From Epiperipatus broadwayi (lineage: Eukaryota; Animalia; Onychophora): a stretch of 64,000 bases of DNA. Positions 1 through 52,298 of the stretch are shown here, in pieces; within the stretch, counting starts at the first letter, position 1; every line of letters starts with the position of its first letter. The DNA lies in assembly GCA_028023455.1 (NCBI GenBank), contig JAQFVV010000008.1, forward strand, positions 14,322,001-14,386,000, in the 5' to 3' direction. Under the pieces are notes generated by a model. The model made no database searches. It worked only from the letters and a program-made list of their open reading frames with translations, and had not been told where the DNA came from. The translations under genes and the position numbers were made by a program.

Positions 1-299
1 TTACCACAGAAATAAAATGCAAAAATACTTTTGATCTGCACTAATGATTCTAATTTCTTTCTTTGTAGTCAAATAAAGTCTGGAGTGTTAAGTAATGATA
101 AAGGTGATGAAATTTGCCATTGATAGTTTGATTAAAAGAAACTGATTTCTATAATAATCTGCCAGTTAGAACACATAAAAAAATTTCTGGCAAAGCTATA
201 GAAATTGGCAGGATTTTCCAGTTAATTTATTGCTATATATTTGATTTTCTAAGTGAAACAGATCCATTGATGCTGAAGAAGTTCTGAACAATTGTTTAT

Positions 300-4765: not shown

Positions 4766-4821
4766 CATACAAGACTGTTTCAGGTGTTAATGGACCTTTA
4801 GTGATATTGGATGATGTCAAA
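4766..4821 (+). CDS. ATP6V1B: V-type proton ATPase subunit B, internal coding exon (56 nt)
   Basis: ttttaag|CA TAC AAG ACT...GTC AAA|gtaaga encodes (T)YKTVSGVNGPLVILDDVK, the conserved V1-B N-terminal motif; phase 1 to 0. Confidence 0.97.
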
Positions 4822-7800
4822 GTAAGATTTTTGTATGTTAAAATATGTAAATTTTCCCTTATGGTGCATATATTTGTATGCATAATTGCAATTATTTGTG
4901 AAAATAAAGTATTAATTTAAAAAAAAAAAAAGAATTCTTATTTAAGGAATTATTTTAAAAACAAATTTATTTAGATATTAATTTTACAACATTTACAAAC
5001 ATTTTCAATAAATATAGAATTAATAAACAAATGTATAAGAAAATATATATGAAATAATAATAAATAAAATTTTGAGTATTACTGGAAAAATATTAAATAT
5101 CTCACATCCTGATAAAAAATTATGAATTAGTTAACTGATTCCAGAAATTTTTGATTATAGTCAGAAGTATAAATTCAGAGACTATATATGTCAACAATAA
5201 TTATGATTTTATCTTTTAAATAAAAAATAAATGGCCTTTTAATGCAGTCTTAAGACATATTATGATGATTAATGGCAGATCAATGAATCATCATTGCAAA
5301 TAGATATTAAACAGTCTAAGATCTTCATACAAAAAGATAAAAATAATTATTTTAAATTTAGAGGCTATGTATCAATGATTTTTTTTTTTGTAGGTATAAA
5401 ACAGTCCAAGGTTTATTTAAAAAAATTTTATTTCTAGAATTTGAGTAAATATTGATGAACTTATTATTATTTAAGATGTTTGTTATTTATAAATATTTTT
5501 TTTTTAATTTAGTAATTGAAGAACATATTTTATGTTTAAAAGATAATATATTATATTATGCAGCCTCGAGTTTCTATTTTCAACTACAAAACAAAATTTT
5601 TGAAATCATTTTAGTTAAACATCTCTTAATTTTTTACTAGGATGTGTGATGTTTTCTTTATAAATATTTTTGATATTTAAAATATTAATTAATTATAAAT
5701 TATTTAATGCAATATTTATTAGATTAATATCTTCAATTAGTCTATATTTTTTAAGAACTGTAGGCAATTTTGAATAATTTTTTTTTTTTGAGAGTGATAT
5801 GAACATTAAAAATGTTATGATTTTTTAAAATAAATTCTAAGTTGCATTGAAATGTGTTTATGTAAGGTGTATATGATATTTTATTTAAAATACAAATACT
5901 TTCATCTTTATAGCTTTATCATTAGTGGAATTATTTTTTTCTTTTTCCAAAGAGTTAAATTGAAATGTATTACCCTTAATATTATCATTTATCAATGTTT
6001 ATCATTAAAATAAATGTATTTATGGAGAAACAAATATTTTCTCATTAAGTTTTAGTGTAAATAATTTTTTTTAAGGATTGTTTTTCTATTTACTGATCCA
6101 GTTTCAAATGAAGAATATTTTATATTTCAAATATAATTAATACATATGGTTTTGTAGTTATTTTTAGGACTTAAAATAATAATATGAAATTTATTTGTTA
6201 TAAATGTAAACAGCCAAAAATTTTAAAACAATCTTTTGAACTGAGAATAGGATGTCTGACTATATTTATTTGTTGATTTATGGTAACACATGTAATTTGC
6301 ATCAAAGATCTTGATCTTTTTCTGAAAAAAATGAGAAAAGATATATTCTACAAAATTAATAAAATAGATTCTTGAATATAATGCAGATAAAATACAATTA
6401 ATAATGCCATGTTTTATTTAGTGAATTTAATCACCTTACATGATCAGGAATGTGATGACAGCATTTATTTGGGAGTTTATTGAAATTAAATGGTAATTGT
6501 TTTTATTAATTATCTTATGCTCTAGATGATATTGTTAATGATTGGCTAAAATAATGATGATGATGATAATAATAAGTATTTATATAACTTGTTGGTAATA
6601 ATGTTTTACAAATAAGAAATATGTGAAAATAAAATAATGAAAAAAGTATTTATAATACTGAAAATTAATATATATATTTTAAGTCCAATGCTTTATGCTA
6701 TTGCTGAATATTTTTTTTATAAAATTGTTTGAAAAATACAAATGCTTGAATTTTTTATTTAAACACTCTAGTAATTTCTTTGAATATTTATTAATTTAAC
6801 ACAGGAAATCCTACAAATAGTATTTCTAAATATAATACAAACATTAATTTTACATTTATCTTACAAGATTATTTAATATTTCTTCTTTTCTATAAAAAAT
6901 TATGAAAGATATCTGCATAATAATTTTTTGATAAGTAAGTTGAAATCATTATTTTTCTATATATAAAATTAATCTTATTGATTGAGCATTCTCACATTTT
7001 ATTAAAAACCAATTTTTGATTGAAATTGTTAACAGCAGATTTATTGTAAAGTGAGTTTTTAAAACAAATAAGGACAGAAATAGAGAAAGATGATAATTTT
7101 GAAGCAATTATTGTAAACTTAAAAATTTATTTGATTTGCACCAAACACCAGATAAAATTATCAAGTTTTTTTTTTTGTTAATCAATTAAAAAAAAAAAGT
7201 TTTATTAATTGAATTGTAGTTATTATGAACAAAATAAATTTTATCATTCATATAATAATTCAGACCCTTTTCTCACACCCTAAAAAATTATATTGCAGAA
7301 TTATAAAAAACAAACTATAGCCATCTTGATTTAAATTTTGACTACTCTCGGACCTTGGGTCTTTGGGTAGGATGTTGGAGATAACGCGATGAAGTACATG
7401 ACCTATGATTGCACCTACTTTTAATAGACCAGCTCAATATTCATCAGTTAAACTCAAATGCAATTTGGGTCAGTTCATCTCCATACCCTAAACCCTCTTT
7501 TGGTTCCGTTATTCCTGGAATTCAAACCCAGGGAGAATTTGAATTTGACTCTGTTAACAGAGATGCACCCATGTCATCTGATGACTACCATATAGATTAC
7601 AATTAGTATAATGTATCTAGTAATCAACCAACAAAATTTCGATTCTATTTTATATTATATCATATATATGTGTGTATATTTGAGGCTATAGATTAATGAG
7701 TGAATACAAAATCGAATTAATAAATTAGAAACCGAATCGAAATTAATAAATTCACTAACATTTATTATGGAACAAACATAAAAATTATAAGTTCGAAATA

Positions 7801-12033: not shown

Positions 12034-13963
12034 CAGCCTTATCAGGTCTGCAAAAGGTTTGAAAAATCTATTAACTATGTTATAATACCAGCCTGAGTTT
12101 TTTATATGTAAGTATTTTAAGAAAGTGAGCTATTTATTTTTAAGATATGAATGTATAAAGGCTGGGGAAATGATCTTAAAACTTTTATATACAATAGAGC
12201 ATGTTTAATAGTGGTATGTGATATTTTATCAATTTATATAAGGACAATGAGATCGTAATTGTTTGTGCCTTATGATGTGTTTTATATTTCTAATTTGAAT
12301 TCAATATATACATGTGAGTGTGTATTAGTGTGCGTACATTTCTAAATTTAGATTGTTTTAAGATATATATAAAGCTTAGGCTGTTGTTATAGAGTAGTTG
12401 GAGATAGTCAAACATCTGCAATGTATGAGGTTTATTATTTTATATTGGATAGTGGTCAGTGATATAAAGCTTGTATATATGCAATAGAGTATGCTATGAT
12501 TGGCATATTATTTATTTATATATGTTGTAGTTACTAAAACTTATATTAAGTATGAGATGTTTTGAAATGATAAGACTGTTTTTAATAGATGTATCATTCA
12601 TAATTTTATTTAAGAACTTACATTATACTATTTGCAGATTTTTTTTTATCATTTGTAAGAGATAGATCATCAAAGAGTTCTAAATGGAATATAATTGAAT
12701 ATATGATTAGGGTTTCCAATATCAATTCTACCTATCCCGGGATCCCAGTATTATTAAAGAAAATTCAATACCATACCAAGAAAAACGATATTTTAATATT
12801 GATTATAATTTGAATCAGGTGTAATTTTAAGAATTTTATAAGATTCAAAATATTTTAAAAAGCTCTACTAGAGTAATTTAGTTTTGTAAATAGTATTATT
12901 ATTTTATTTTATTGCTTTAAAATATAACAAAAAATTTAAGCTAAAAAATATGTATTTAAAAAATTTATCATGGTTTCATATATGGTAATTTTCTATTGCC
13001 ATTTTTAGTCAAAATCTGAAATAAAATTACTGTGAAATATGGTAATTATTGTATACTTTTTAACTTTTATCAGATTCAATTGTATGACATTTTTCCAATG
13101 TTGAATTAAAATTCCATGTAAAGAATAAGATAGATATTTTGGCTCCATTATGTTGATCAACAAATGTTTCATATTCAAAATCACATAACTTGGGCAGCAC
13201 AGAATATCTATATTTTCACTAAATAGAGCTTCGGGCGAACTCAAACATTATTTTTATGAAAAAATCCAGTTTTCTTCCTCAGGAATTCTGTGAATTTTTC
13301 TTTATTCTATCACTCCCCAAAATGTAGTCAGTTGCCCTTTTTAAAATATCTGCTAATGGCATTTTTTGATTAGAATATTATCAAAAATTTGGTCCATGCT
13401 TTTCAGATGACAGCATCAATAATTTATGCTTTTTAAAAGTCTATTTTTTAAAACAAAAGTAACATTTGAATAGTTTTTATTATACTGTTTATTTTCTTTT
13501 ATTTTTTGTTTTGTTAATTTCTTTTAATTTATGCTTTGTCAATTTTTTGAAAAATGAATTTAAGAATGTTTTATTTTTACTTATGTTTTTCTTATTTTGT
13601 TATGGCTTTAAACTTTGTTAAATTGAATAAAATAAGACTTCTTTTGAATACCAAAAATACTGGGATTTTCATTTTTGGTATTGATATCAGTACCAAAATA
13701 CCGGTTTTAGAGAAACTCTTCTGTACTGGAAACTCTCCATATGACTTATCGATAAATAGCAATAAATTTATAAAAGTGTGAATGTTTTGATCCACTTTTA
13801 TCACGTTTACATATAAAATAAAATACTATGTGCTGAAAGTTGTGGTATTCTTTTATTGATAAACAGAGTAAAACTCTCCATACAGTATTGCCACCTGTGC
13901 TAAACAGAGTAATCAATGGTTGCCAGAAGGCTTGTGCATAAAATCCCTATCTAATGCCTATTC

Positions 13964-14022
13964 ATCCAATATCCCCAGACTAGTTTCTGGCTTGTGGCCT
14001 TCGTCAGTGAGGAGCTTTGGAT
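13964..14022 (-). ncRNA. Type I hammerhead ribozyme motif, copy A1 (consensus form)
   Basis: Minus strand ATCCAA-AGC-TCCTCA CTGACGA A GGC cacaa GCC A GAAA CTAG TC| TGGGGA-TA-TTGGAT; stem I 6+6 bp; predicted cut between 13978 and 13977. Confidence 0.8.
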
Positions 14023-14419
14023 CTGAGAGCACTGCATCTAGATCTTAGGATCTAATGCAACCCTCTAGCAACCACCTTTTATCTCTACTTAACTACAAAA
14101 CTATGAGAATGAAATTGAAAACACAAAAAATATTTTCAATCTAAGCTCAATAGCTTATATAGTCATATGGGTCTGAACTCAGTTCAGCACCCGTACATTT
14201 TGGTGTCTTTGGCTCTTTTACAACCATAGCCACCACTATCGTATTAGGCAGGATTGGTGTTAAACCATTAAGCATCATAAGATCACATTTCCTATACTAG
14301 CACATTAATTGTTGATAAACAGAGCAAAACTCTCCATACAGTATTGCCACCTGTGCTAAACAGAGTAATCAATGGATGTCAGAAGGCTTGTGCATAAAAT
14401 TCCTATCTAATGCCTACTC

Positions 14420-14478
14420 ATCCAATATCCCCAGACTAGTTTCTGGCTTGTGGCCTTCGTCAGTGAGGAGCTTTGGAT
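14420..14478 (-). ncRNA. Type I hammerhead ribozyme motif, copy A2 (consensus form)
   Basis: Identical to A1 over 59 nt. Confidence 0.8.
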
Positions 14479-14875
14479 CTGAGAGCACTGCATCTAGATC
14501 TTAGGATCTAATGCAACCCTCTAGCAACCACCTTTTATCTCTACTTAACTACAAAACTATGAGAATGAAATTTAAAACACAAAAAATATTTTCAATCTAA
14601 GCTCAATAGCTTATATAGTCATATGGATCTGAACTCAGTTCAGCACTCATACATTTTGGTGTCTTTGGCTCTTTTACAACCATAGCCACCACTATCCTAT
14701 TAGGCAGGATTGGTGTTAAACCATTAAGCATCACATGATCACATTTCCTATACTAGCACATTAATTGTTGATAAACAGAGTAAAACTCTCCATACAGTAT
14801 TGCCACCTGTGCTAAACAGAGTAATCAATGGATGCCAGAAGGTTTGTGCATAAAATCCCTATCTAATGCCTACTC

Positions 14876-14934
14876 ATCCAATATCCCCAGACTAGTTTCT
14901 GGCTTGTGGCCTTCGTCAGTGAGGAGCTTTGGAT
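14876..14934 (-). ncRNA. Type I hammerhead ribozyme motif, copy A3 (consensus form)
   Basis: Identical to A1 over 59 nt. Confidence 0.8.
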
Positions 14935-15149
14935 CTGAGAGCACTGCATCTAGATCTTAGGATCTAATGCAACCCTCTAGCAACCACCTTTATCTCTACT
15001 TAACTACAAAACTATGAGCTATTGAGCTTAGATTGAAAATATTTTTTGTGTTTTCAATTTCATTCTCATAGTTTTGTAGTTAAGTAGAGATAAAAGGTGG
15101 TTGCTAGAGGGTTGCATTAGATCCTAAGATCTAGATGCAGTGCTCTCAG

Positions 15150-15208
15150 ATCCAAAGCTCCTCATTAACAAAGGCCACAAGCCAGAAACTAGTCTGGGAA
15201 TATTGGAT
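15150..15208 (+). ncRNA. Hammerhead motif copy B1, catalytic core destroyed
   Basis: CTGACGA changed to TTAACAA (15165, 15167, 15170), plus stem I G>A at 15199. Confidence 0.75.
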
Positions 15209-15586
15209 GAGTAGGCATTAGATAGGGATTTTATGCACAAGCCTTCTGGCACCCATTGATTACTCTGTTTAGCACAGGTGGCAATACTGTATGGAGAGTT
15301 TTGCTCTGTTTATCAACAATTAATGTGCTAGTATAGGAAATGTGATCATGTGATGCTTAATGGTTTAACACCAATCCTGCCTAATAGGATAGTGGCTATG
15401 GTTGTAAAAGAGCCAAAGACACCAAAATGTATGGGTGCTGAACTGAGTTCAGACGCTATTGAGCTTAGATTGAAAATATTTTTTGTGTTTTCAATTTCAT
15501 TCTCATAGTTTTGTAGTTAAGTAGAGATAAAAGGTGGTTGCTAGAGGGTTGCATTAGATCCTAAGATCTAGATGCAGTGCTCTCAG

Positions 15587-15645
15587 ATCCAAAGCTCCTC
15601 ACTGACGAAGGTCACAAGCCAGAAACTAGCCTGGGGATATTGGAT
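15587..15645 (+). ncRNA. Hammerhead motif copy B2, cleavage triplet mutated
   Basis: GTC changed to GCC (T>C at 15630), which also breaks the ACTAGT palindrome; stem II GGC>GGT at 15612. Confidence 0.75.
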
Positions 15646-16042
15646 GAGTAGGCATTAGATAGGGATTTTATGCACAAGTCTTCTGGCATCCATTGATTAC
15701 TCTGTTTAGCACAGGTGGCAATACTGTATGGAGAGTTTTGCTCTGTTTATCAACAATTAATGTGCTAGTATAGGAAATGTGATCATGTGATGCTTAATGG
15801 TTTAACACCAATCCTGCCTAATAGGATAGTGGTGGCTATGGTTGTAAAAGAGCCAAAGACACCAAAATGTATGGGTGCTGAACTGTATTCAGATCCATAT
15901 GACTATATAAGCTATTGAGCTTAGATTGAAAATATTTTTTTTGTTTTCAATTTCATTCTCATAGTTTTGTAGTTAAGTAGAGATAAAAGGTGGTTGCTAG
16001 AGGGTTGCATTAGATCCTAAGATCTAGATGCAGTGCTCTCAG

Positions 16043-16101
16043 ATCCAAAGCTCCTCACTGACGAAGGTCACAAGCTAGAAACTAGTCTGGGGATATTGGA
16101 T
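16043..16101 (+). ncRNA. Hammerhead motif copy B3, stem II weakened
   Basis: Stem II is GGT/GCT instead of GGC/GCC, leaving two G-U wobbles in a 3-bp stem; core and GTC intact. Confidence 0.75.
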
Positions 16102-16784
16102 GAGTAGGCATTAGATAGGGATTTTATGCACAAGCCTTCTGGCATCCATTGATTACTCTGTTTAGCACAGGTGGCAATACTGTATGGAGAGTTTTGCTCT
16201 GTTTATCAACAATTAATGTGCTAGTATAGGAAATGTGATCATGTGATTCTTTTATTATTCACCGGAAAAAGTTATCTATGATGAAATATCATATATCTTG
16301 ACTTTTAATAATTTTTTTTCTAAATACTAATGGTTCAAACATCTGATTTTTATTTATTAAGACACATCATCACATATCTTAATAACAATCAAAGTAGAAC
16401 AAAATTCCTCTATGATATTTGTAATCTTACCCAATAAACTGAAATTATTAATTTGTGTTAGTGAATATAGTATTTAATGTCATTTGTAGATATTTTTTTT
16501 TTGTTGTTTATGTGGTAAATTATGGTATAGTTTTAAAAAAACTAAATAAATATAGAAACTTGTGGGAAAAAATTAAAACATTGATAATGCATAATTTTTA
16601 TTTATTTTTGTAGCTTTTGTTTGTATTTCCTTTTATTATAATCTCACTAAAAATGTTAATACTGAAATATTGTAAATAATTTCACTTTGACTGTTGAAAT
16701 TAGTAAATGTTTGATAAGTTTTTTATGTAATTTTATTTTTTAAAATAATATTAAATTTGAATTTGTTTTTATTTACTTATTTAG

Positions 16785-16883
16785 TTTCCTAAATATGCTG
16801 AAATTGTCCATTTAACTTTAGCTGATGGCACTATTCGGAGTGGTCAAGTTTTGGAAGTTAGTGGGAACAAAGCTGTGGTCCAG
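16785..16883 (+). CDS. ATP6V1B: V-ATPase subunit B exon (99 nt)
   Basis: atttag|TTT CCT...GTC CAG|gtacat encodes [33 protein letters not shown]; phase 0 to 0. Confidence 0.98.
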
Positions 16884-18028
16884 GTACATTAAATCATAAT
16901 TATGATTTTTAAAAGAATTGTTTTTTTGTTTTTTTATTATATGTTTTATGTTAATAATAACATGCTTATGTATATTTATAAAAGTATAAATATTTGGCAA
17001 AGAGAGGATTGATAATGGGTGTGTATAAGGCATTATTTTATCTAAACTTTCATAGGCATTCAGTAAAATTTTAGGGAAACTCGACTAAACAGAAAAAAGT
17101 TATAGGTGGACAGAGTTTTTATTCATCTATAAGATAAATTTATAGAATCATTTTTTTCTGCATTCACATATAATTTAAAATATTTTATTAGTTTGGTTGT
17201 GTTATATATTTTAATTTAAGTTTCTAAATCTTTTTTAGATAGAAGTTGAGGATTTGTAGACTTAAAATTAAAGAATTGCTTTTGTTTTGAAATAAGTCAA
17301 CTGCAATTTGGAAATATATTCTAAATAATTTTGCAGTGGAAAATTTTGTAAAAAAGTTGCAAATATTTCAGCCATCATTTTCGAGCAATAATTGGCAAGA
17401 TAAGAAAAATTCTAATTAAATCAAATTGACCAAAGTGAAAAGTAACTATGAATGCCATTATATTATAAAGCAAGTAGAAGCCATATTCTATTTGAATAAT
17501 ATAGATAAAACTCAAAAACTTTCTACTTAAAAGTTTAGAAAAGACAAAAAAAAAGTTGCCACATTCAACAAATAAAATGAATTCCGATATCAAAACAGTC
17601 TGAAAAATTAATAAAAACTATATTATATAATTTGATGATTCCAAAAAAAGTAAAAAAAAAAAAGCCTTATCATGATAGCATTGGTGTAAAAAATATTTCT
17701 GAAGTTGATGATGTGGAAAAAGCTAAAACATGCTTTTAAAATTTAGTGAGTTTTGTTTAGCAAGACCATTGTTGGAAAAACTGGTGAACCTGTATTGTTC
17801 ACCACTTATAACTTGTTTCAAATTGATTTAGTGTTGCTTCTTCCAAATAAATGCTCCCTCATATTTGAGGTCAGAAAATAGTATAGAATAGTTGTAATAT
17901 GTGATGTGATGCACTGTGATTTCTTATACGGAGTTGGGAATCTCTCAGCGACTATAGCCCAGAGAAACCTGTTAGCCACTTTAACTTCCCTTTCCATTCC
18001 CTGCCCTAAGTTTGTTCCATATTCATCT

Positions 18029-21000
18029 CTATCCTGCTCTATCCCATCTCCACAACACAATCTTTATCAACTCTATGGTCTTTATATTTAAATCTCCCTT
18101 ATCTTTTCCCAAATCCAGCATAAAAAACAATAACCCACTTTCTGTATAATCACTTTCTTTATGTTTATTCTTCCACAACTTCATTATTTGTACCCTTTCT
18201 GCTTTCAGGCATTTACATTCAATTAACAGATGCCTAATATTTTCTATGCCTTCCTTACACAACTTGCAGACTAAATCACCCACATTTTTCCATTTATGTG
18301 TATATTCCTTTGTTGCTAAAGATCCCGTTCGAGCCTTAAACAGTAAACTACTTTCCTTGCTATTATCATAAATTAACTCGCACCCAATATTCTGTTTACT
18401 TCTATATATATTTAAACTCTTTTTACTCTCCATACTAGTTCTCCATCTCTCCAACTCCCTATTCTTTATTAATGCATCTATTCTTCTATCCCATTCCTTA
18501 ACACTCAACAATTCTCCTAACACAATCATCCCACCTTTTGTATAAGTATACTGACATAAATTCTTTATCCAAATCTTCTGCATATCGCATTACCTTTCTC
18601 ACCCATCTTGTTGCCTGCCCTTTATTCATAACCCAATTAAATACTATTTTGGCTATTCTTTTATTATCCATAAACTGCAATCTACCGAACATTTTCATTT
18701 TGCTTTTTGCATCTCTCATATAAAAACTTGACCATCCCATTTCTCCTTGAATTGCCTCCTTTGCCATCCACACATCTGCATCTAATTCATGTCTTCCTAC
18801 TTCTCTTTGTACTTTTTCTAAGTAATCTAATACCCCTTTACTAACACATAACGCATCATTACCATATGTTAACCCTGCTACTGCCACTCCCTTCCATACA
18901 ATTCTAGCTACATCATATTTATTATATGAAAACACTGTTAATTTCTTTATCAATCCCTTTCTTTTCTTTGCTTCATTTATCAATTTTTTCTCCCATTCAT
19001 CCAAGCAATTTCTCTGATTACTTAAGATGATTCCCAAATAGTTATATCTATTCACCACACTTAACTTTATATCCCCCAATAAAAATTCTTTGTCTTCTCT
19101 TTCCCCAGTATTAATCATCATTACTTTTGATTTTTCTTCACTAAATTTAATCCCCATCTCTTCACCCACCCTTGTGCATGTCCTCAACATAACTTCAATA
19201 TCTTCTCTTCTTTCTGCACACAAAAAGACATCATCCGCAAAAAAAGACCCGACAAAGTATATACTCCCTTGCCACCTATTAATGGTATCTCTATCCCTCT
19301 TCCTAGTCTTTCTATTGCTCTCTCCATTTCTCTCAAATACAACAAAAACAAAATAGGTGACATAGGGCATCCTTGCCTTAGTCCCACCTCATTTTTAACT
19401 TTAACTGATTCTATATTCCCTAATTGATATGTATAGTAATTATTTTCATATAATTTCTTAATAATATCCACTAAAGCTCCATCCATTCCCAAATTTACTA
19501 AACTTACCCATAATCTATTTCTATTTACTCTATCATATGCCTTCTCTATATCTATAAAAACCATATATAACTGTCTACCTGTATTCCTACTCATATCCAT
19601 AAGTTGTGTAACTACAAATAAACTATCTCCTATATACCTATCTGATCGAAAACCTCCTTGCATTTCTCCCACTATATTATTTTCTTCCATCCATTTTGCA
19701 ACCCTTCCAGCCACCATATATGAGAAAACTTTATATAGTACTGATGTTACCACTATCAGTCTATAATTGTTTAACTTTCTATGATCCTTACCCTTTCCTT
19801 TAAATAGTAGCCTTACTCTTGTATTACTCCAACTACCTGAAAAATTTCTCTTCTGTGCCATCTTATTAAAACATGATAATAATTTTAATTTTGCCCTATG
19901 CCCTAAATTCATTACCATCTCTGCTGCCCATCCATCCAAACCTCTTGCCTTTCCACTTTTCAATTTCTTACCTGCCTCATTCAGTTCATTTTCTGTAAAC
20001 CTAATATTCCCATTACTATATGCTTTCATGTTTGCTATCACTCTGTCCTTCACATCTAACATCTTTTCTATATCCATTACATACTTATTTAAGATTATCT
20101 CTAATTCTTCTCTAGAGCTACACTCTATTCCCTCATCATCTAGTAATACTATTTCTCTCTCCCCTACATTTCTTCTTTTAATGTATTTCCAAAATTTTTT
20201 ACTCCCATCTCTTCCACTTTTATTAATATCCTCCAACAATTTACTATTCAATTTTATTCTCTCTATATAATTATCTATTTTAGCCAACTTTTTTTTCTAA
20301 GTACTTTTCCCATTTAACATTAACATCTTTTTCACTTTCTTTGTTCTTAATAGCACACTTATATTCTCTGCATGCTTTTTCCCTCTCTTTTACTAACTCT
20401 CACTTTCCTATTACTTTTATTCTTCTGAATATTCTCACCTAAAACCCTATTTGCCACTTTTTCTATTTCACCACACCAGTCCTTATACTCATCCCCAACC
20501 AACTCTTCCATGGTTTCTTCAACTTTTATTTTATACTCTTCTAACTTATTCTTATCATTCACTCTCCATCCACATCTTTCACTATCCTTTCTACTTTTAT
20601 TACTATTTTCCATCACATTACTAACCATTTCTATTATAAAGAAGTTATGATCACTATTACATACTCTCTCTTCATTATCAAACACCTTAATTTTCTGTAC
20701 TTTATTCATTCCCTCTTTCTCTACTAATACATAATCTATTGTGTGGAATATATTATTTCTAGACCATGTGTATTGTCCCTCATAAATATTTGATAAATTT
20801 CCAATGCTCAAATTCACTCTCTGACAAAAATTCTTCAAAAGCTGTCCATTCTTATTACCTACATCATCAATTTCTTCAATATGCCCATTCATATCCCCTA
20901 TAACCATTATTCTCTTCCCCTTTTCTTTGAAACTCTGTATATCCTTAACTAGGCATTCATATATGCTACTGTTCCACTCCATTATAGTTTGACTATCTCC

Positions 21001-21474
21001 AGTGGCTATATACACTATAGCCACCATCCATTCTTGTCTTCCTAACCTTATCTCAAACCACAAATGTTCTTGACATTTAACAGTATTTAAATATTTTTTT
21101 TGTCATAACTCCTATACCACCACCCTTTTTTTCTTTTTTTTTCTATTTATACTCTGCCATACCAAATCTTCCAGAATAGGTTCTTTTTCTTCTCTTAGAT
21201 GTGTTTCCACTACTGCTAATACCTCAAGCTCTTCATTTTTAATTGCTTTGTTTAATTCCAGCCACTTTTCTGGTCTCCTACCACCTTGCATATTCAAATA
21301 CCCAATTTTAACAATTTCTTCTTTCCTAACTACTCTTTTATAAATTCTTTTGACTCTTTCTTCTCCATTATATTTATAAATAACTTGCTTACCATTAATT
21401 TTACAAATCCATTCCCTCTCCACATCTACATTTATATCTAAATCAGCTACTCTTTGATTATTTCTTACATCCAA
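18029..21474 (-). pseudogene. LINE ORF2: AP endonuclease + reverse transcriptase + C-terminal CCHC finger, frameshifted
   Basis: GYLNMQG..VVETH, VIGDMNGH, TIDYVLV, SDHN (APE); NNYRLI, QGGFR, FIDIEKAYDRV, GLRQGCPMSP, FADD, YNYLG (RT); C-x2-C-x8-H-x4-C CKLCKEGIENIRHLLIEC. Confidence 0.93.
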
Positions 21475-21539
21475 TCCATTCTTCTTCTTTCTGATAACAC
21501 TGCCATTTAAAACTCCACCTCCCCTTTATAAGTTTCCCG

Positions 21540-22510
21540 AACTATATTCTTTATAAATCAAACTCCCTAAAACTTCACTTCCTTGTTTTTCTAAGTGCAA
21601 TCCATCTTTACTATATAACTCCCTCTTTCCAATAAAAAAATCCCACACATCCACAAACATGACATCATTTCTCTCACAATTTTTTCAATCTCTCATTGAT
21701 AGAACATGCCTTATCTAACATATACCTCTTGTCAAATCTTGGTAATAATCCAATTATTCCTACTCTTCCTTTAATCTTACTCAAATTTCTAATCAATTCT
21801 ATGTACTCATAATTTTTTCTTTTTAAGGTTTTGACAAATTTTTTGTCCCTACCATAACATACACATCTCTACTCATTTTATCTGTAACATCCCTAATTCT
21901 AGCTCCAGGCAAACATACTCTTACATACCTGTTTCTATTTTCCCTTGCAATTATATTTCCACGTTCTCTAATTAGTGAATCTCCTATCAATACTGTCTCA
22001 TAGTCTACTTTCTCTGCTTCATCCGTAACATTCTCTATCACCTTCTGAACTTACTTATCTATTTCTTCTTTATCATTAGTATTCAATAATTTCTTCATCT
22101 GCTCACACTTCGTCTCTAATGATTTTAATTTTGCTTCTATATCCTTTACCTCTTCCTCTATTTTACTTATTCTTTTGCTAACCATCTCCATTTCACTACT
22201 AATTTTTCCACTTATATCTCCCATCACTCCACTAAAACCATACTCTATCCTATCTTCCTCAATTATATTTTGCTTCCTTTCTCCTGACTTTGTCTTTAAA
22301 CTATCTACACTTAGAAACCACTTTTTGATCTTTTATCACATTTACACACTGTCTACATAACCATAAAGCTCTTAAATTTTTACTAGTCGTATTTAAACAT
22401 TTCGAGTGATAAACCTCATCACATACAATATACTTTACTGCAGCCCACCTAATTTCTTTCTGATCATTATATATGCATTGTGGAATACAAATGCAATCCT
22501 TATATATGTT
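21540..22510 (-). pseudogene. LINE ORF1: PHD finger + coiled coil + SGNH/GDSL esterase, with stops and frameshifts
   Basis: CIC...CDEVYHSKCL...WLCRQC (PHD); heptads SKRISKIEEEVKDIEAKLKSLETK; VLIGDSLIR, CLPGARI, VGTKN and YSKDGLHL (DGLH at 21595-21606). Confidence 0.85.
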
Positions 22511-22789
22511 AAATGCGGTGGGGCGCCACGATAGAGAAGCTAAGTAAAGTAACATTACAATGGCTAAGCGCTTTGAGGTCTTATTATGTCTTCATATTCA
22601 TAGCAGAATCAGAATAGAAAAAAGATGGAATATTTATATAGGCCGATGAAATTTAAATTTATGTAAATTAGAGTTCAAAATGTCCACAGAGGGGGAAGCA
22701 TGATTCTTTGCAATTTATAGCATAGGTGTTGTTAGCTATGTACCATGCTTTTTTAATTTTTTGTTTTGTATCATTTCAATATATTCTAT

Positions 22790-23330
22790 AGCAGCAGATG
22801 TGGGTTTAAATATATGTGGTATTCCAGGAAAATAGAGCTATAATTCAAGTTTGTCAGATGCTCTTTTATATATGTATTGGTGTTGTGAAAGGCATGTGGA
22901 TGGAGATGTCCTGCATTCGCCATAGTATGTTGCTTTGCATCCAGTTTAAGGAGCATTTAATTTTTTGTACAGTCAGTTCAGGCTTGAGTCTATCCTTGGA
23001 ATTATTAGTCTATTGATTGAGGGAGGGGGGCCAAAACTCAACTGAAATTTTGGGGAAAGGGTTTTATTAAACATTTTTGTTAGTGCTGAAATGTATGGCA
23101 GGAGTGGCTAAGATCTATCATTATTGGTGGGGGTTCGAGTTTACTTTGCGATAGAATTGTTTGGCTCTCTTGTTAGGTGGTTGTATTTGAATCCAATGGA
23201 CGTTAAGTGTTTTAGGTATTTGCTTTGCAAGAGAAGTCAGGTTTTCATAATAAGTGATTGCTGTTTAGGAGAAAGGATAGACCATCTACTGGTGGAATAT
23301 GTAAATATTATTAGGGGACTTTGAAGTGAT
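22790..23330 (-). mobile_element. Decayed Penelope-like element remnant (linker + GIY-YIG)
   Basis: Minus strand LPYISALTKMF (~23101-23070), then LYK....TGCKATYYGECR...LSQH..I...IA..SWNTTYI (~22970-22810), resembling the PLE LPY motif and YKI.C..C...YIGET.R.L..R..EH. Confidence 0.5.
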
Positions 23331-24739
23331 GAGTTTATGAATGCTTAGGCTAAAGCTTAAGCCCAAAATTAAGATTGACATGTATACAACCTTATTTTTA
23401 TTTTATTAATGTGATGATAAGCAAGCTAAACATATGTCACAAATATGACAAGGATGGCCACATCATTAACTTAAACGAGTGCCTAATTTGTAATAGACCC
23501 TGATAAATTGATAATAAGTGCATTTTCAAAATTCAAGTTATACTATACAAAATGCACATCATGTTTATTAATCTGCCAAAAATACAGTGATGTACAGCTG
23601 TAACTTAATGGCAAATTACATATATGGATGAAAATTATTGATGTTTATAAACTCTTGCAAGAATCACAATTCTCTAAAGTCGTAGCAAATAAATTATATA
23701 AAACATCTTCAAATGTTACCGGAAAATTTTTTTGAACTAGTAAATGAAGTTAAATTTTTTATGTGTGATTTTTTATAAATTGGAGGGAAGATATGATAAG
23801 TGAAAGTCATGATTGTGTTGAAGTATATGTGCAACATAATAGAAATAAAGAATTCTAACATAAAAGATGAATTTCTTCAAAATATTACTTATAAAAAAGT
23901 TAAGTCAATGCAAAAACTTGATAAACTTTAATAGTTGAAACAAAATCAAATAGAATATGATTTATTTATTATCCATTTCTAAACAATTACCATTATTTTA
24001 TATATATATTTTTTAAAAAGTTAATTTTAAACTTATATCAAAATCCGTGGTTAATTGTCATAATTTTATTTGACAAATAATGAAAAACTAAATTGTAAAA
24101 AAATAAGTTATTGCTATTTGCCAACTTTTTACATGGAGAAAGTGCATGAAGAAGAAAAAAATCCTCCAAAATTGTACATCTGTGTAAATTATAAATATCA
24201 AATTTATAAATAACTCTTTATATAAGTAAAAGACATTTAAATTTACCTAATTATTATTGTTTAACTATTTTTTATTTCATATTATCTTCAATTATAAGAG
24301 AGATAATCTCATCATGACATAATCTTGCTATAGATTTATGTTGATTATTAAAATGAAGTTTTTTATTCTTCATTATGCTTTTTTTTAAAAATTGATAGTT
24401 GTTTAATATTCACTTGACATATTTACTGATATTTAAAAAAAAAAGGTTTTCCTCTTTCCAATTGATAGATTAGGATAATTAACTTGTTCTTGATTTCAGA
24501 AATTAAATTTCTGAGTGCTTATATATTAATATATGTGTGTGTATGCATATATGTATATATATCATAAATATAGTAAAAATACTATTACCAAATTATTTAT
24601 GCTGTCATTAAAGATTGAAAATAATTTTGGATTATTTATCCAATAAAGAATAGAGATTTATTGCCTACAAATCTGAATATTGTAAATTTCTAAAGATCAT
24701 CATTATCATTCTCAATTATTATTGATTCACTGCAGGATG

Positions 24740-35960: not shown

Positions 35961-36038
35961 GAAGAGTTTTCAATGGATCAGGTAAACCAATTGATAAGGG
36001 ACCTCCTGTTCTAGCAGAAGACTTCTTAGATATCCAAG
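35961..36038 (+). CDS. ATP6V1B: V-ATPase subunit B exon (78 nt)
   Basis: atatag|GA AGA GTT...ATC CAA G|gtaata encodes (G)[25 protein letters not shown](G). Confidence 0.98.
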
Positions 36039-36323
36039 GTAATATTTTGTATTTTATTATTAATCTTTTTTATCATTAAGTAGATATTTAATGTATAATA
36101 TGTAACATCCAAATAGCTATTTCATGAAAAATAAAGGAGTTTAGGAATAACTTTTATATTACATAGTAGTAAGATATCCAAGTAATATTTTTTATTTTAT
36201 TATTAATCTTTTTTATTTTATCACAAAGTAGATATTTAATGTATGATATGTATTATTCAGATAGCTATTTTATGAAAAATAAAGAAATTTAGGCATAACT
36301 TTCATATTATATAATAGTAAGAT
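36028..36323. repeat. Two-copy ~144-bp tandem duplication that includes the exon 3' end and donor site
   Basis: agatatccaaggtaatatttt at 36028 versus agatatccaagtaatatttt at 36172; similarity continues to atagtaagat at ~36323. Confidence 0.88.
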
Positions 36324-50223: not shown

Positions 50224-52298
50224 TAAGTATTAGTCTAATTTATCAATTTTTTTTTTTTTTTAAATTATTAAGTTATTAGAAATAAAAATTGTGTATCCTA
50301 TAAGAATATAATTTACTAAAATAATTACGTTTAACACTTCCATAAAATATATACTTTATAGATATAATCTATTTGATATAAGTTTATGTTTTTTAATTAT
50401 TAAGCACTAATTAGTCATTATCATTTCAAAATCTATTTTAGACATTCTGCTTCATAATTTTTTTTCTTTATTTTGGTTTGTTTGTTTTTGTTTTTTTTTT
50501 AAATCTGAAGTTACATTTTTATCCAACTTTATTTAGCTTTTATTTATTATTGTTTTAGTAATAATATTCATTATTGATTTTAAAAGTACAAAACTGAATC
50601 ATACATTATAATGTAGATATTTCTCAATATCTTTGAATATGTTTATAATGTTTCCATGACATTTTTTTTTTTAAATGTGGTCATGTAGTTTTTTTTTTCA
50701 AGTTGAGCTTTTTGTAGGTTATTGTTTCTGCTATTTATCAACTACATATCATAATTTCACTGATATTTTTCTGCATTTTTTTTTTCTTTTGCATTCTATC
50801 TTCAAATTGATTTTTATCATTCATGCTTAAAGTGGTTTTATTTTAAGTAATAAATATTCCAATAAAGTCATTAGCAGGAATATTTGAAATATTGCTTTCA
50901 GTTTTTTTTAAACTTATTTTTTGAAATTCTAAAAAAAAAAATTAAGTAGGAAAAATTATAGCTAATTAAGGGATTATTTGATCATCGTATGTGAAGTAGT
51001 AGCATTTAATTTAGCCACTTATTTTTCTTACTCCAATTTTGCATCATGGTAATCCATAATAAATACATGTCCCATGCTATTCTATCCACATCCTCAGATT
51101 AGTTTTTTATATATAGCTTTAATAGTGAGGAGTTTTATAATGCCTTTTTTTTTTTTTTTAAGCTATCTTTTACTCTCTCTTTCTTTTTTTTTTTATTGCC
51201 AAGCTATCATATTGAAATTCAAAAACATCTTAATGTTTTGACTCCAAACCTACTTGCTTATATAATTATATAGATTTGTCACCAGTATATATATATATAT
51301 TGGTATTCTCGGTTTTTTAATAAGTTGGAACCTCTAAATTTCTTAAACAGGATTGTCACAAAATTAACAAAACATTACATGATCCCATTTCATACAATAC
51401 TTTTATATAACAAATATTGTTTCTCCTCTGTTTCTGTAATCTAATGTAAACTTGAGTGTTCAGTATATTGTGTCAATTGGAGTCATGTAGTGTTTTGTTG
51501 GTTTTATTATTTATGATTAAATAAATATTGTAAGGGATTTGTAGATTTGATGATCTACTAAGATCCCTTAATTCATTTTATATGAACTTTTTTTTTTTTC
51601 TAAGTTAAGTTTATATATGTGTGTGCTTATAATGCCACTAAATTTTAGAAGTTAGTAATATAAATATATTAGCTATTAGGAAGATATGATGTTGGGCAGA
51701 TTAAAGTTGTTATTGCGGTCATTGAGTGGAAATAGTGTTATACTTGCTTAATCAGAAGTGTCACTATGTTAGTCCAGTTGAAGAATTACAATAAATTGTG
51801 CATACCACTTCAATTTAGATCATATTATGTGGCAAAATTATTTATTTAAAATTTTAAAGTTCTTCACATTATTAAAATGAGTGAATACATACTGTATATA
51901 TTTTCTTTACAATCTATAATTTCTTAACAAATATTTATTCATGTAAACTAAGTACTGCCTACTTGGTTAAATTTAAGAAATGCAGTTATTTTTTAAAATT
52001 ATAAATATTTACTAACTGCAAACAACAAGAAATATTCTTAAGTGTATATATACAGCATAATCTCATCAATGAAAATACTATGTTAAATGAGTATAATAAT
52101 CAATATAAAATTTTATAATTTATTCAACTAATTGGGTTTTTTTTATTGCTAATATAACTATGAAGAAAAATTTAAATACATCAAGTAATTTTATTTATTT
52201 GTATTTTCTCGTTTGTTTTCATGAAATCAATTGCAAAAGAGCATGTGTTATTACATACTGTGCGTTTTGGCACAGTTGATTGTGTTCGACTTAGAATT

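Follow-up and report, generated by a model that had tools for sequence, protein, structure and literature searches.

The metazoan retrozymes without long terminal repeats (non-LTR retrozymes) are built of tandemly repeated, non-coding units 150-450 bp long, in each of which there is a type I hammerhead ribozyme; low GC content, target-site duplications (TSDs) of more than 4 bp, high copy number, co-existence with Penelope-like elements (PLEs) and a highly self-paired monomer are also characteristic of the group (PMC7229834; Li, Clavereau & Pollet 2026, 10.64898/2026.07.22.740005). According to the circular-RNA model, hammerhead processing yields a monomer, which is then copied round and round (PMC7229834). 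We analysed 64,000 nucleotides of the onychophoran Epiperipatus broadwayi (assembly GCA_028023455.1, contig JAQFVV010000008.1, positions 14,322,001 to 14,386,000 of the forward strand), hereafter the window; coordinates are those of the whole 64-kb window. It contains a 456-bp hammerhead repeat, which we call family A and which shares the traits listed above. Its unit lies at the upper end of the size range, and RNA circles are here a prediction. The arrays of family A, at 2-8 units, are short; nearly all have two arms in inverted orientation, on which the retrozyme papers lay no stress. We consider it very likely that the insertion in the window represents a single retrotransposition event of a young, high-copy, non-coding animal non-LTR retrozyme which moved via PLE machinery.

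The hallmarks of PLE insertions are partial tandems, an inverted 5'-truncated copy and a tail of 30-40 bp at one end (PMC8557442). A PLE enzyme studied in purified form cuts AT-rich DNA on both strands and extends each of them; its reverse transcription begins at two internal positions ~85-92 nt past its own hammerhead cut, with the tail between them (PMC11167929). Family A resembles PLEs (PMC8557442, PMC4209133, PMC11167929) in its partial tandems, inverted 5'-truncated copy, single tail and AT-rich target, in putative reverse transcription start sites ~100 nt downstream of the hammerhead cut, and in a type I hammerhead whose helix III is tiny and palindromic. Unlike PLEs, it has no open reading frame (ORF) for a reverse transcriptase (RT) or GIY-YIG domain and no sequence similarity to 25 sampled PLE loci. 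Its hammerhead is of the 'canonical metazoan' form (6-bp helix I with internal loop, 3-4 bp helix II), whereas the PLE 'min-HHR' has a long helix II and a short helix I.

Metazoan type I and PLE hammerheads with a palindromic helix III cleave as dimers (PMC4209133, PMC6765202). Among the newt satellite 2 and axolotl hammerheads (PMC7229834), HHR_Amex1 has, like family A, a helix III of one bp under a palindromic tetraloop; weak activity is expected from the monomer, and cleavage from the dimer. Axolotl HHR_Amex2 (PMC7229834) also has a mismatch at the base of helix II, which is U.U there and A.A in family A. In contrast to the newt and axolotl cases, both weakening features are found in one motif in family A, and the unit sequences are unrelated. 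The core and the three-way junction are those of the Rfam model Hammerhead_1 (RF00163), but family A misses even E<=10 with it. The plant LTR retrozymes (PMC4918200) are likewise non-autonomous and hammerhead-bearing, and movement via circular RNA is proposed for them; however, they have type III hammerheads in LTRs, a primer-binding site (PBS) and a polypurine tract (PPT), 4-bp TSDs and Gypsy helpers, none of which is present in family A. Animal retrozymes and their link to PLEs are already published, and family A is an additional member, not a new category.

Concerning the anatomy of the insertion, repeats were mapped by Tandem Repeats Finder (TRF), a repeat finder and blastn of the unit. 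The non-coding 456-bp repeat spans ~13856-16247 (~2.4 kb, ~5.4 units in total; TRF, repeat finder). A previous reading of the DNA from its letters (the sequence-only reading) had described six 456-bp units in one direct array; the repeat and its location stand, but the units are arranged as 2.55 on the minus and 2.8 on the plus strand (Table 1). TRF gives a minus array at 13856-15018 (period 456, 2.6 copies, 97% matches) and a plus array at 15017-16251 (period 437, 2.8 copies); both periods, 437 and 456, occur in the plus arm, and its middle unit (15317-15753) has a 19-nt deletion. The arms are inverted, up to 769 nt long and 97-98% complementary (repeat finder). Read in hammerhead orientation, each arm has an outward-facing 3' end, and the two 5' ends adjoin in the centre. 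The exact 10-mer TTCTTTTATT is found at 13848-13857 and 16247-16256 and is preceded by A in both places, giving a TSD of 10-11 bp; as ATTCTTTTATT flanks the whole two-armed structure, the latter is the product of one insertion event. The G+C content is 45-49% in the repeat and 25% in the window. The unit was correctly read as lacking an ORF: its longest open frame is 61 aa, and no ORF is present in 30 loci of family A. ARAGORN found no tRNA-like gene in the array, which therefore has no tRNA-derived head of a short interspersed nuclear element (SINE). The only Rfam matches, to plant-miRNA-precursor models at the palindrome centre (14957-15127), are far under the gathering score and were rejected as artefacts of the long inverted repeat.

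Based on blastn of the unit, nearly every family A locus shares the anatomy of the window. TSDs of ~6-13 bp (mostly 8-11) were recognised by eye, with no scoring rule, at 19 of 20 two-armed insertions. In all 20, the end of one arm falls within unit positions 447-456, and the second arm continues as far as positions 31-52 of the following unit; the probability of this one-tail pattern under random choice of the two ends is ~1e-6. The fixed ends lie ~112 nt and ~150-165 nt downstream of the hammerhead cut. Family B, a sister hammerhead family of the same genome, also has TSD-flanked insertions with two arms and one tail: of the 11 that have two arms and lie with both ends inside the locus, 9 end at +99..126 and +174..188 from the cleavage site. 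Tails are 31-52 nt long in family A and ~55-60 nt in family B. The combination that marks a PLE insertion (partial tandem, inverted 5'-truncated copy, one tail) is thus present both in the window and in the two-armed loci of family A. Also, family A comprises dispersed multicopy insertions with TSDs, and its short non-coding tandem units carry a type I hammerhead without LTR, PBS or PPT, as expected of a retrozyme. In nearly every locus, the inner ends of the arms have unrelated positions within the unit, and the arms are of different length. This asymmetry indicates two independent complementary DNAs (cDNAs) and led us to reject a single cDNA that snaps back into a hairpin. A difference in mutation load between arms with and without the tail was rejected as well (1.00% vs 0.85% in the hammerhead, 1.13% vs 1.13% elsewhere).

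The variants were classed per insertion relative to the family majority. Of these, 416 are confined to a single unit (private), 34 occur in all covering units of an insertion, and only 16 are partly shared among units. Among the 34, 31 span both arms and ~14 are found in no other sampled locus; one variant, for example, is present in 8/8 units of locus L017. Variants fixed in all units of both arms imply that the lineage passed through a single unit, and the 416 private variants make strong homogenisation after insertion unlikely. Such clonal units suggest that one monomer was the source of all copies in an insertion, in agreement with the circular-RNA model. The monomer cut after GUC folds to -139.9 kcal/mol (z = -4.0; 0/100 shuffles as stable) into a compact, mostly paired structure, in which stem I brings the two ends together.

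A type I hammerhead-like motif is found in each full unit. In the minus copies it consists of a distal stem I (AUCCAA/UUGGAU), an internal loop (AGC/UA), a proximal stem I (UCCUCA/UGGGGA), the core elements CUGACGA, GAAA and GUC, a helix II (GGC/GCC) closed by A.A with the loop CACAA, and a helix III of a single A-U pair closing the palindromic CUAG. The motif had been quoted for every unit; it is exact in the three minus copies only, where CUGACGA, GAAA and GUC are in register, and the plus copies have 4, 2 and 2 substitutions. Copies 4 and 5 lack the conserved core. In motif 4, CTGACGA is changed to TTAACAA (C3, G5 and G8) and TGGGGA of stem I to TGGGAA, and it is predicted to be inactivated by the core changes. 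Motif 5 has GCC in place of GTC (U16.1 to C), and GGT in place of GGC gives a G.U pair in stem II. Motif 6 has an intact core, and its stem II is reduced to two G.U pairs and one G-C pair (GGC to GGT, GCC to GCT). The predicted cleavage site of the first copy is where the sequence-only reading placed it, after the C of GUC at 13978 and before the U at 13977 on the minus strand. That reading also held for the A.A at the base of stem II, which replaces the G10.1-C11.1 pair in all six copies; in family A as a whole, A is found at 10.1 in 108/108 copies and at 11.1 in 111/111, and neither position varies. For the isolated motif, the hammerhead fold is at -14.2 kcal/mol and the minimum-energy fold at -16.6 kcal/mol, stems I and II being common to both. 

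At least four further hammerhead repeat families (B, C, D and E), all of the same design, are present in the genome; D and E came up by chance in fetched loci. Family B passes the Rfam RF00163 threshold (best 40.2 bits). It has the stem I UCCUCA/UGGGGA and the layout of family A, with helix II GACC/GGUC, a canonical G10.1-C11.1 pair and the loop III CCGG. The loop III is palindromic in every family (CUAG, CCGG, CCGCGG, UCAUGA, CCAAUUGG), and so two motifs could form an intermolecular helix III of 6-10 bp, with a predicted energy of -4.8 to -14.1 kcal/mol. With families B, D and E aligned, 96% of the cells of the named structure are paired, vs 27-48% with a slid partner, and 6/11 pairs are changed on both sides, which was reached by 0/500 shuffles. 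A covariance model built from families B, D and E only, without family A (R1), finds all six copies in the 64-kb window and just one other weak match (13.9 bits). Covariation of the stems, proposed earlier as a test of the motif, is therefore seen as compensatory changes among the sister families and between them and family A, which fits their model at 40.5 bits; family A itself varies little. At 10.1/11.1, a non-Watson-Crick pair stands in three of the five families (A.A, C.A, U.U), and this recurrence suggests that weakening of the ribozyme is tolerated, or even selected. Outside the hammerhead, families A and B are ~50% alike, but a CUGAAC-NNA-GUUCAG hairpin followed by CCCAUAUGA (14173-14196, minus strand) is kept in both; the hairpin may be a recognition or promoter element. 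The one weak match to R1 elsewhere in the window (13.9 bits), at 51091-51131 on the minus strand, is a decayed hammerhead-like relic (CTCCTCA ... AATC/TGAGGA) and probably an old retrozyme remnant.

Table 1. Features of the family A insertion, its hammerhead motifs, the sister families and the flanking host exons. Positions are those of the window unless a locus (L) is named; R1 scores are in bits.
Feature	Position	Strand	Details
Left target-site duplication ATTCTTTTATT	13847-13857		Final 2 nt could be the element's own
Minus arm, 2.55 units	13856-15018	-	Units 13856-14311, 14312-14767, partial 14768-15018 (blastn)
Minus-arm 3' end	Outward, left	-	Stops at the 'no-tail' site (...TTTATCAA)
Minus-arm 5' end	Central	-	Truncated at unit position 205
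Head-to-head arm junction	15013-15018		~6 nt imperfect microhomology; inner ends at unit positions 205 vs 153 (blastn, sequence)
Plus arm, 2.8 units	15013-16247	+	Partial 15013-15316, 15317-15753, full 15754-16209 (blastn)
Plus-arm 'tail', 38 nt into next unit	16210-16247	+	3' end outward (right)
Right target-site duplication	16246-16256		Copy of ATTCTTTTATT
Hairpin CUGAAC-UGA-GUUCAG, then CCCAUAUGA	14173-14187	-	Among the few stretches outside the hammerhead common to families A and B (unit alignment)
Motif 1	13964-14022	-	0/59 differences from family majority; R1 40.5, E ~1e-8
Motif 2	14420-14478	-	0/59 differences; R1 40.5 at 14428-14469
Motif 3	14876-14934	-	0/59 differences; R1 40.5 at 14884-14925
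Motif 4 (plus copy 1)	15150-15208	+	4/59 differences; R1 17.3
Motif 5 (plus copy 2)	15587-15645	+	2/59 differences; R1 29.9
Motif 6 (plus copy 3)	16043-16101	+	2/59 differences; R1 35.9
Family B	Loci L051-L070		428-bp unit; found by genome-wide Rfam Hammerhead_1 search
Family C	L073:6662-6727	-	Degenerate; loop III CCAAUUGG
Family D	L013:457-518		Stem I ACCUCA/UGAGGU; 10.1/11.1 C.A; loop III CCGCGG
Family E	L066:1165-1228		Stem I CUUUCA/UGAAAG; 10.1/11.1 U.U; loop III UCAUGA
Upstream host exon	~4768-4830	+	Six-frame scan; peptide ...YKTVSGVNGPLVILDDVK; boundaries approximate
Next host exon	16785-16889	+	Pfam ATP-synt_ab_N, 22.3 bits, above cut-off; ~530 bp past the insertion

Family A is abundant and young. 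A genome-wide search, suggested earlier as a check of copy number, gave at least 2,923 first-look candidates, dispersed in the 5.6-Gb genome, and those scored are 97-99% identical. The mean divergence of the copies from the majority is 1.3%, and 63 of the 105 complete hammerheads, counted in 28 independent loci, show no difference from the majority. Within the hammerhead, variation is highest at N7 (C 93, U 9, A 5). Four runs from other organisms contain thousands of contigs with 85-99% identity, and coverage is deepest at 13904-14063, the hammerhead region. Among the variants listed for these runs (beyond which there are 21 further rows), those within the 59-nt hammerhead are C7 to U and one internal-loop base only, positions 10.1 and 11.1 not being included; the hammerhead flanks have ~1 variant per 7 nt. 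Selection on the hammerhead shows in these comparisons of families and of species. Among the 'loose ends' in the runs of other organisms, the commonest is a diverged 3' module, ~75% like the 3' part of family A.

The sequence-only reading had proposed a non-autonomous retrozyme of Penelope-like origin, and this agrees with the dispersed young copies, the TSDs, the absence of coding capacity, a hammerhead homologous to that of an Rfam-positive family, and the PLE-type anatomy. Concerning the mechanism, a PLE endonuclease would nick both strands of an AT-rich site ~10 bp apart. Each 3'-OH would then prime reverse transcription within the retrozyme RNA, one ~112 nt and the other ~150-165 nt downstream of the cleavage site. 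Both cDNAs would pass through several unit lengths, stop at arbitrary points and be joined in the centre by microhomology. The expected outcome is a pair of head-to-head tandem arms with 3' ends outward, one 'tail' of 38-50 nt and a TSD around the whole. The template would most likely be a unit-length RNA: the type I hammerhead, whose helix III is a single A-U pair closing a palindrome and which would therefore act as a dimer, would cut the multimers, and the monomer would be circularised and then copied round and round. Self-cleavage, the circle and the identity of the helper belong to the inferred part of this scheme. A more specific version, which we put forward tentatively and hold to be somewhat doubtful, is that one circular unit-length RNA serves each insertion and that a PLE dimer primes each strand at a fixed site of its own, the two sites lying 40-60 nt apart and never coinciding. 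The single tail per insertion, the clonal arms and the independent inner ends would then be accounted for. If true, the PLE tail described as 'often at one end' would become a strict rule with a structural cause, and rolling-circle copying of retrozyme circles would gain its first evidence from a genome.

A number of observations weigh against a PLE-mobilised, self-cleaving retrozyme. With Rfam 15, no hammerhead was found at gathering score or E<=10 in the window, the array or 101 nt alone; the Infernal search with the Rfam hammerhead models, proposed by the sequence-only reading as its first check, is thus negative. The miss is likely explained by the A.A at 10.1/11.1 together with the 5-nt loop II. 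The pair at 10.1/11.1 is usually a conserved G-C, and family A has A.A instead. The folding proposed as a further check gave a stable structure for the cut monomer; the isolated 71-nt motif folds about as well as shuffled sequences do (z = -0.76). Within family A, divergence is 1.1% in the hammerhead and 1.3% in the rest of the unit, so that the former is barely more conserved and copies decay almost neutrally after insertion. A run search found the repeat in 14 runs from 5 studies and 8 organisms, none of which is recorded as RNA and all of which are contigs. Also, a PLE inserts RNA in vitro without requiring hammerhead cleavage (PMC11167929). Among 25 PLE loci, no autonomous PLE shares the 3' region or the hammerhead of family A. 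The degenerate hammerhead in L073, which lies ~490 nt upstream of a PLE open frame, belongs to a third short repeat family with at least 1,549 candidates.

The genome itself is rich in PLEs: at least 10,242 GIY-YIG candidates were found, with tandem 3.1-kb units and open frames of 800-901 aa. The loci compared were 20 GIY-YIG loci and 5 longer PLE loci (ORFs of 724-901 aa). The exceptions to the lack of similarity with the family A unit are the hammerhead of L073 and, in L075/L036, an element related to family A that forms a small insertion of its own. In L075:5650-6150 (G000:C132), beside a head-to-head PLE pair, there is a short two-armed insertion ~75% like the 3' part of family A, the arms of which are separated by G+C-rich sequence with a tRNA- or SINE-like look (...GGTTCGCGTCCCGG...). 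No canonical hammerhead is found in the 433-bp spacer of L071 (G000:C12394:20941000-20950999).

These observations lead to the alternative that survives best, in which family A is mobilised by PLEs but the hammerhead is a passenger or a crippled relic, with A.A blocking useful cleavage and an unprocessed multimer serving as the template. We regard it as unlikely. The negative Rfam result, the A.A at 10.1/11.1 and the decay of the hammerhead near the background rate within the family all agree with it, as do the insertion in vitro that is independent of cleavage, the Anolis reads without ends at the cleavage site (PMC11167929) and the poor cleavage of PLE hammerheads in vitro, even as dimers (PMC4209133). 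However, a relic would not be expected to keep the motif, its compensatory changes and the palindromic loop III in at least four otherwise dissimilar families, or to be shared among several organisms better than any other part of the unit, its variation lying mostly at the free N7. A monomer stage is required for variants to become fixed in each unit of the two arms. The non-canonical 10.1/11.1 pair recurs as C.A and U.U, and U.U is also found in axolotl HHR_Amex2 (PMC7229834), suggesting tolerance.

Much less probable is a SINE-like repeat moved by the RT of a long interspersed nuclear element (LINE), its head-to-head layout having arisen by twin priming. TSDs of ~10 bp and 5' truncation are also seen with LINEs, and LINE-type RT fragments (RVT_1) lie nearby at 18501-19388, but the insertions end without poly(A) or a simple-repeat 3' tail, and the hammerhead is of the PLE/retrozyme design. 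Multi-unit arms with two fixed 3' ends 40-50 nt apart and one 'tail' are described for PLEs and not from LINEs (PMC8557442, PMC11167929). An origin without an RNA intermediate, as a fold-back DNA transposon or as a satellite palindrome amplified locally, would account for the long inverted arms and the tandem structure but is hardly credible given inner junctions at a different unit position per locus, unequal arm lengths, outer ends fixed in the RNA-sense orientation, TSDs varying from 8 to 13 bp and thousands of dispersed copies with private flanks.

Concerning the host gene, the insertion sits in a ~12-kb intron of a plus-strand gene of the ATP-synt_ab family, like subunit B of the vacuolar-type ATPase (V-ATPase). 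The repeat had been called intronic, and plus-strand exons are indeed present on both sides (Table 1); additional exons of the gene are found at 38.7 and 43.3 kb. Pfam gives no family for the 22-aa piece of the upstream exon, the peptide of which we take to be V-ATPase B from its conserved motif. The plus arm is sense to the host gene and the minus arm antisense. In the plus arm, the hammerheads have 8 changes in 177 nt, two of which are one shared variant, vs 8 substitutions in 1,062 nt of the remainder; in the minus arm, the numbers are 0/177 vs 14/986. The plus arm of the window is the extreme of 50 arms, followed by 5/118 and 5/177. About 2 changes are expected (Poisson p ~0.001, or ~0.05 allowing for 50 arms), and the excess in the sense hammerheads is therefore suggestive, not established. 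Selection against ribozymes that cut the intron is possible but unproven. An intron transcript of the insertion would form a hairpin with arms of more than 1.1 kb, 97-98% paired, and is a potential source of double-stranded RNA or small interfering RNA within the V-ATPase B intron. The next intron contains a degraded retroelement cluster (17800-23400), in which a 296-aa open frame on the minus strand (18501-19388) has an RVT_1 match just under the cut-off. Two copies of a 148-bp tandem repeat with 86% matches are found at 36028-36323.

Family A provides clean material, being very young (~1.3% divergence), abundant and sharply defined at its ends. What PLE-type integration leaves behind can be read from the genome to the single nucleotide: priming on both strands, two fixed starts, one tail per insertion and clonal units in both arms. 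The recurrent 10.1/11.1 mismatch explains why curated models miss large families. The insertion rules are testable predictions for the poorly understood integration of PLEs and for the circular-RNA template model. For the host, each two-armed insertion puts a hairpin of more than 1 kb in any transcript that crosses it, which here is the pre-mRNA of an essential proton-pump subunit.

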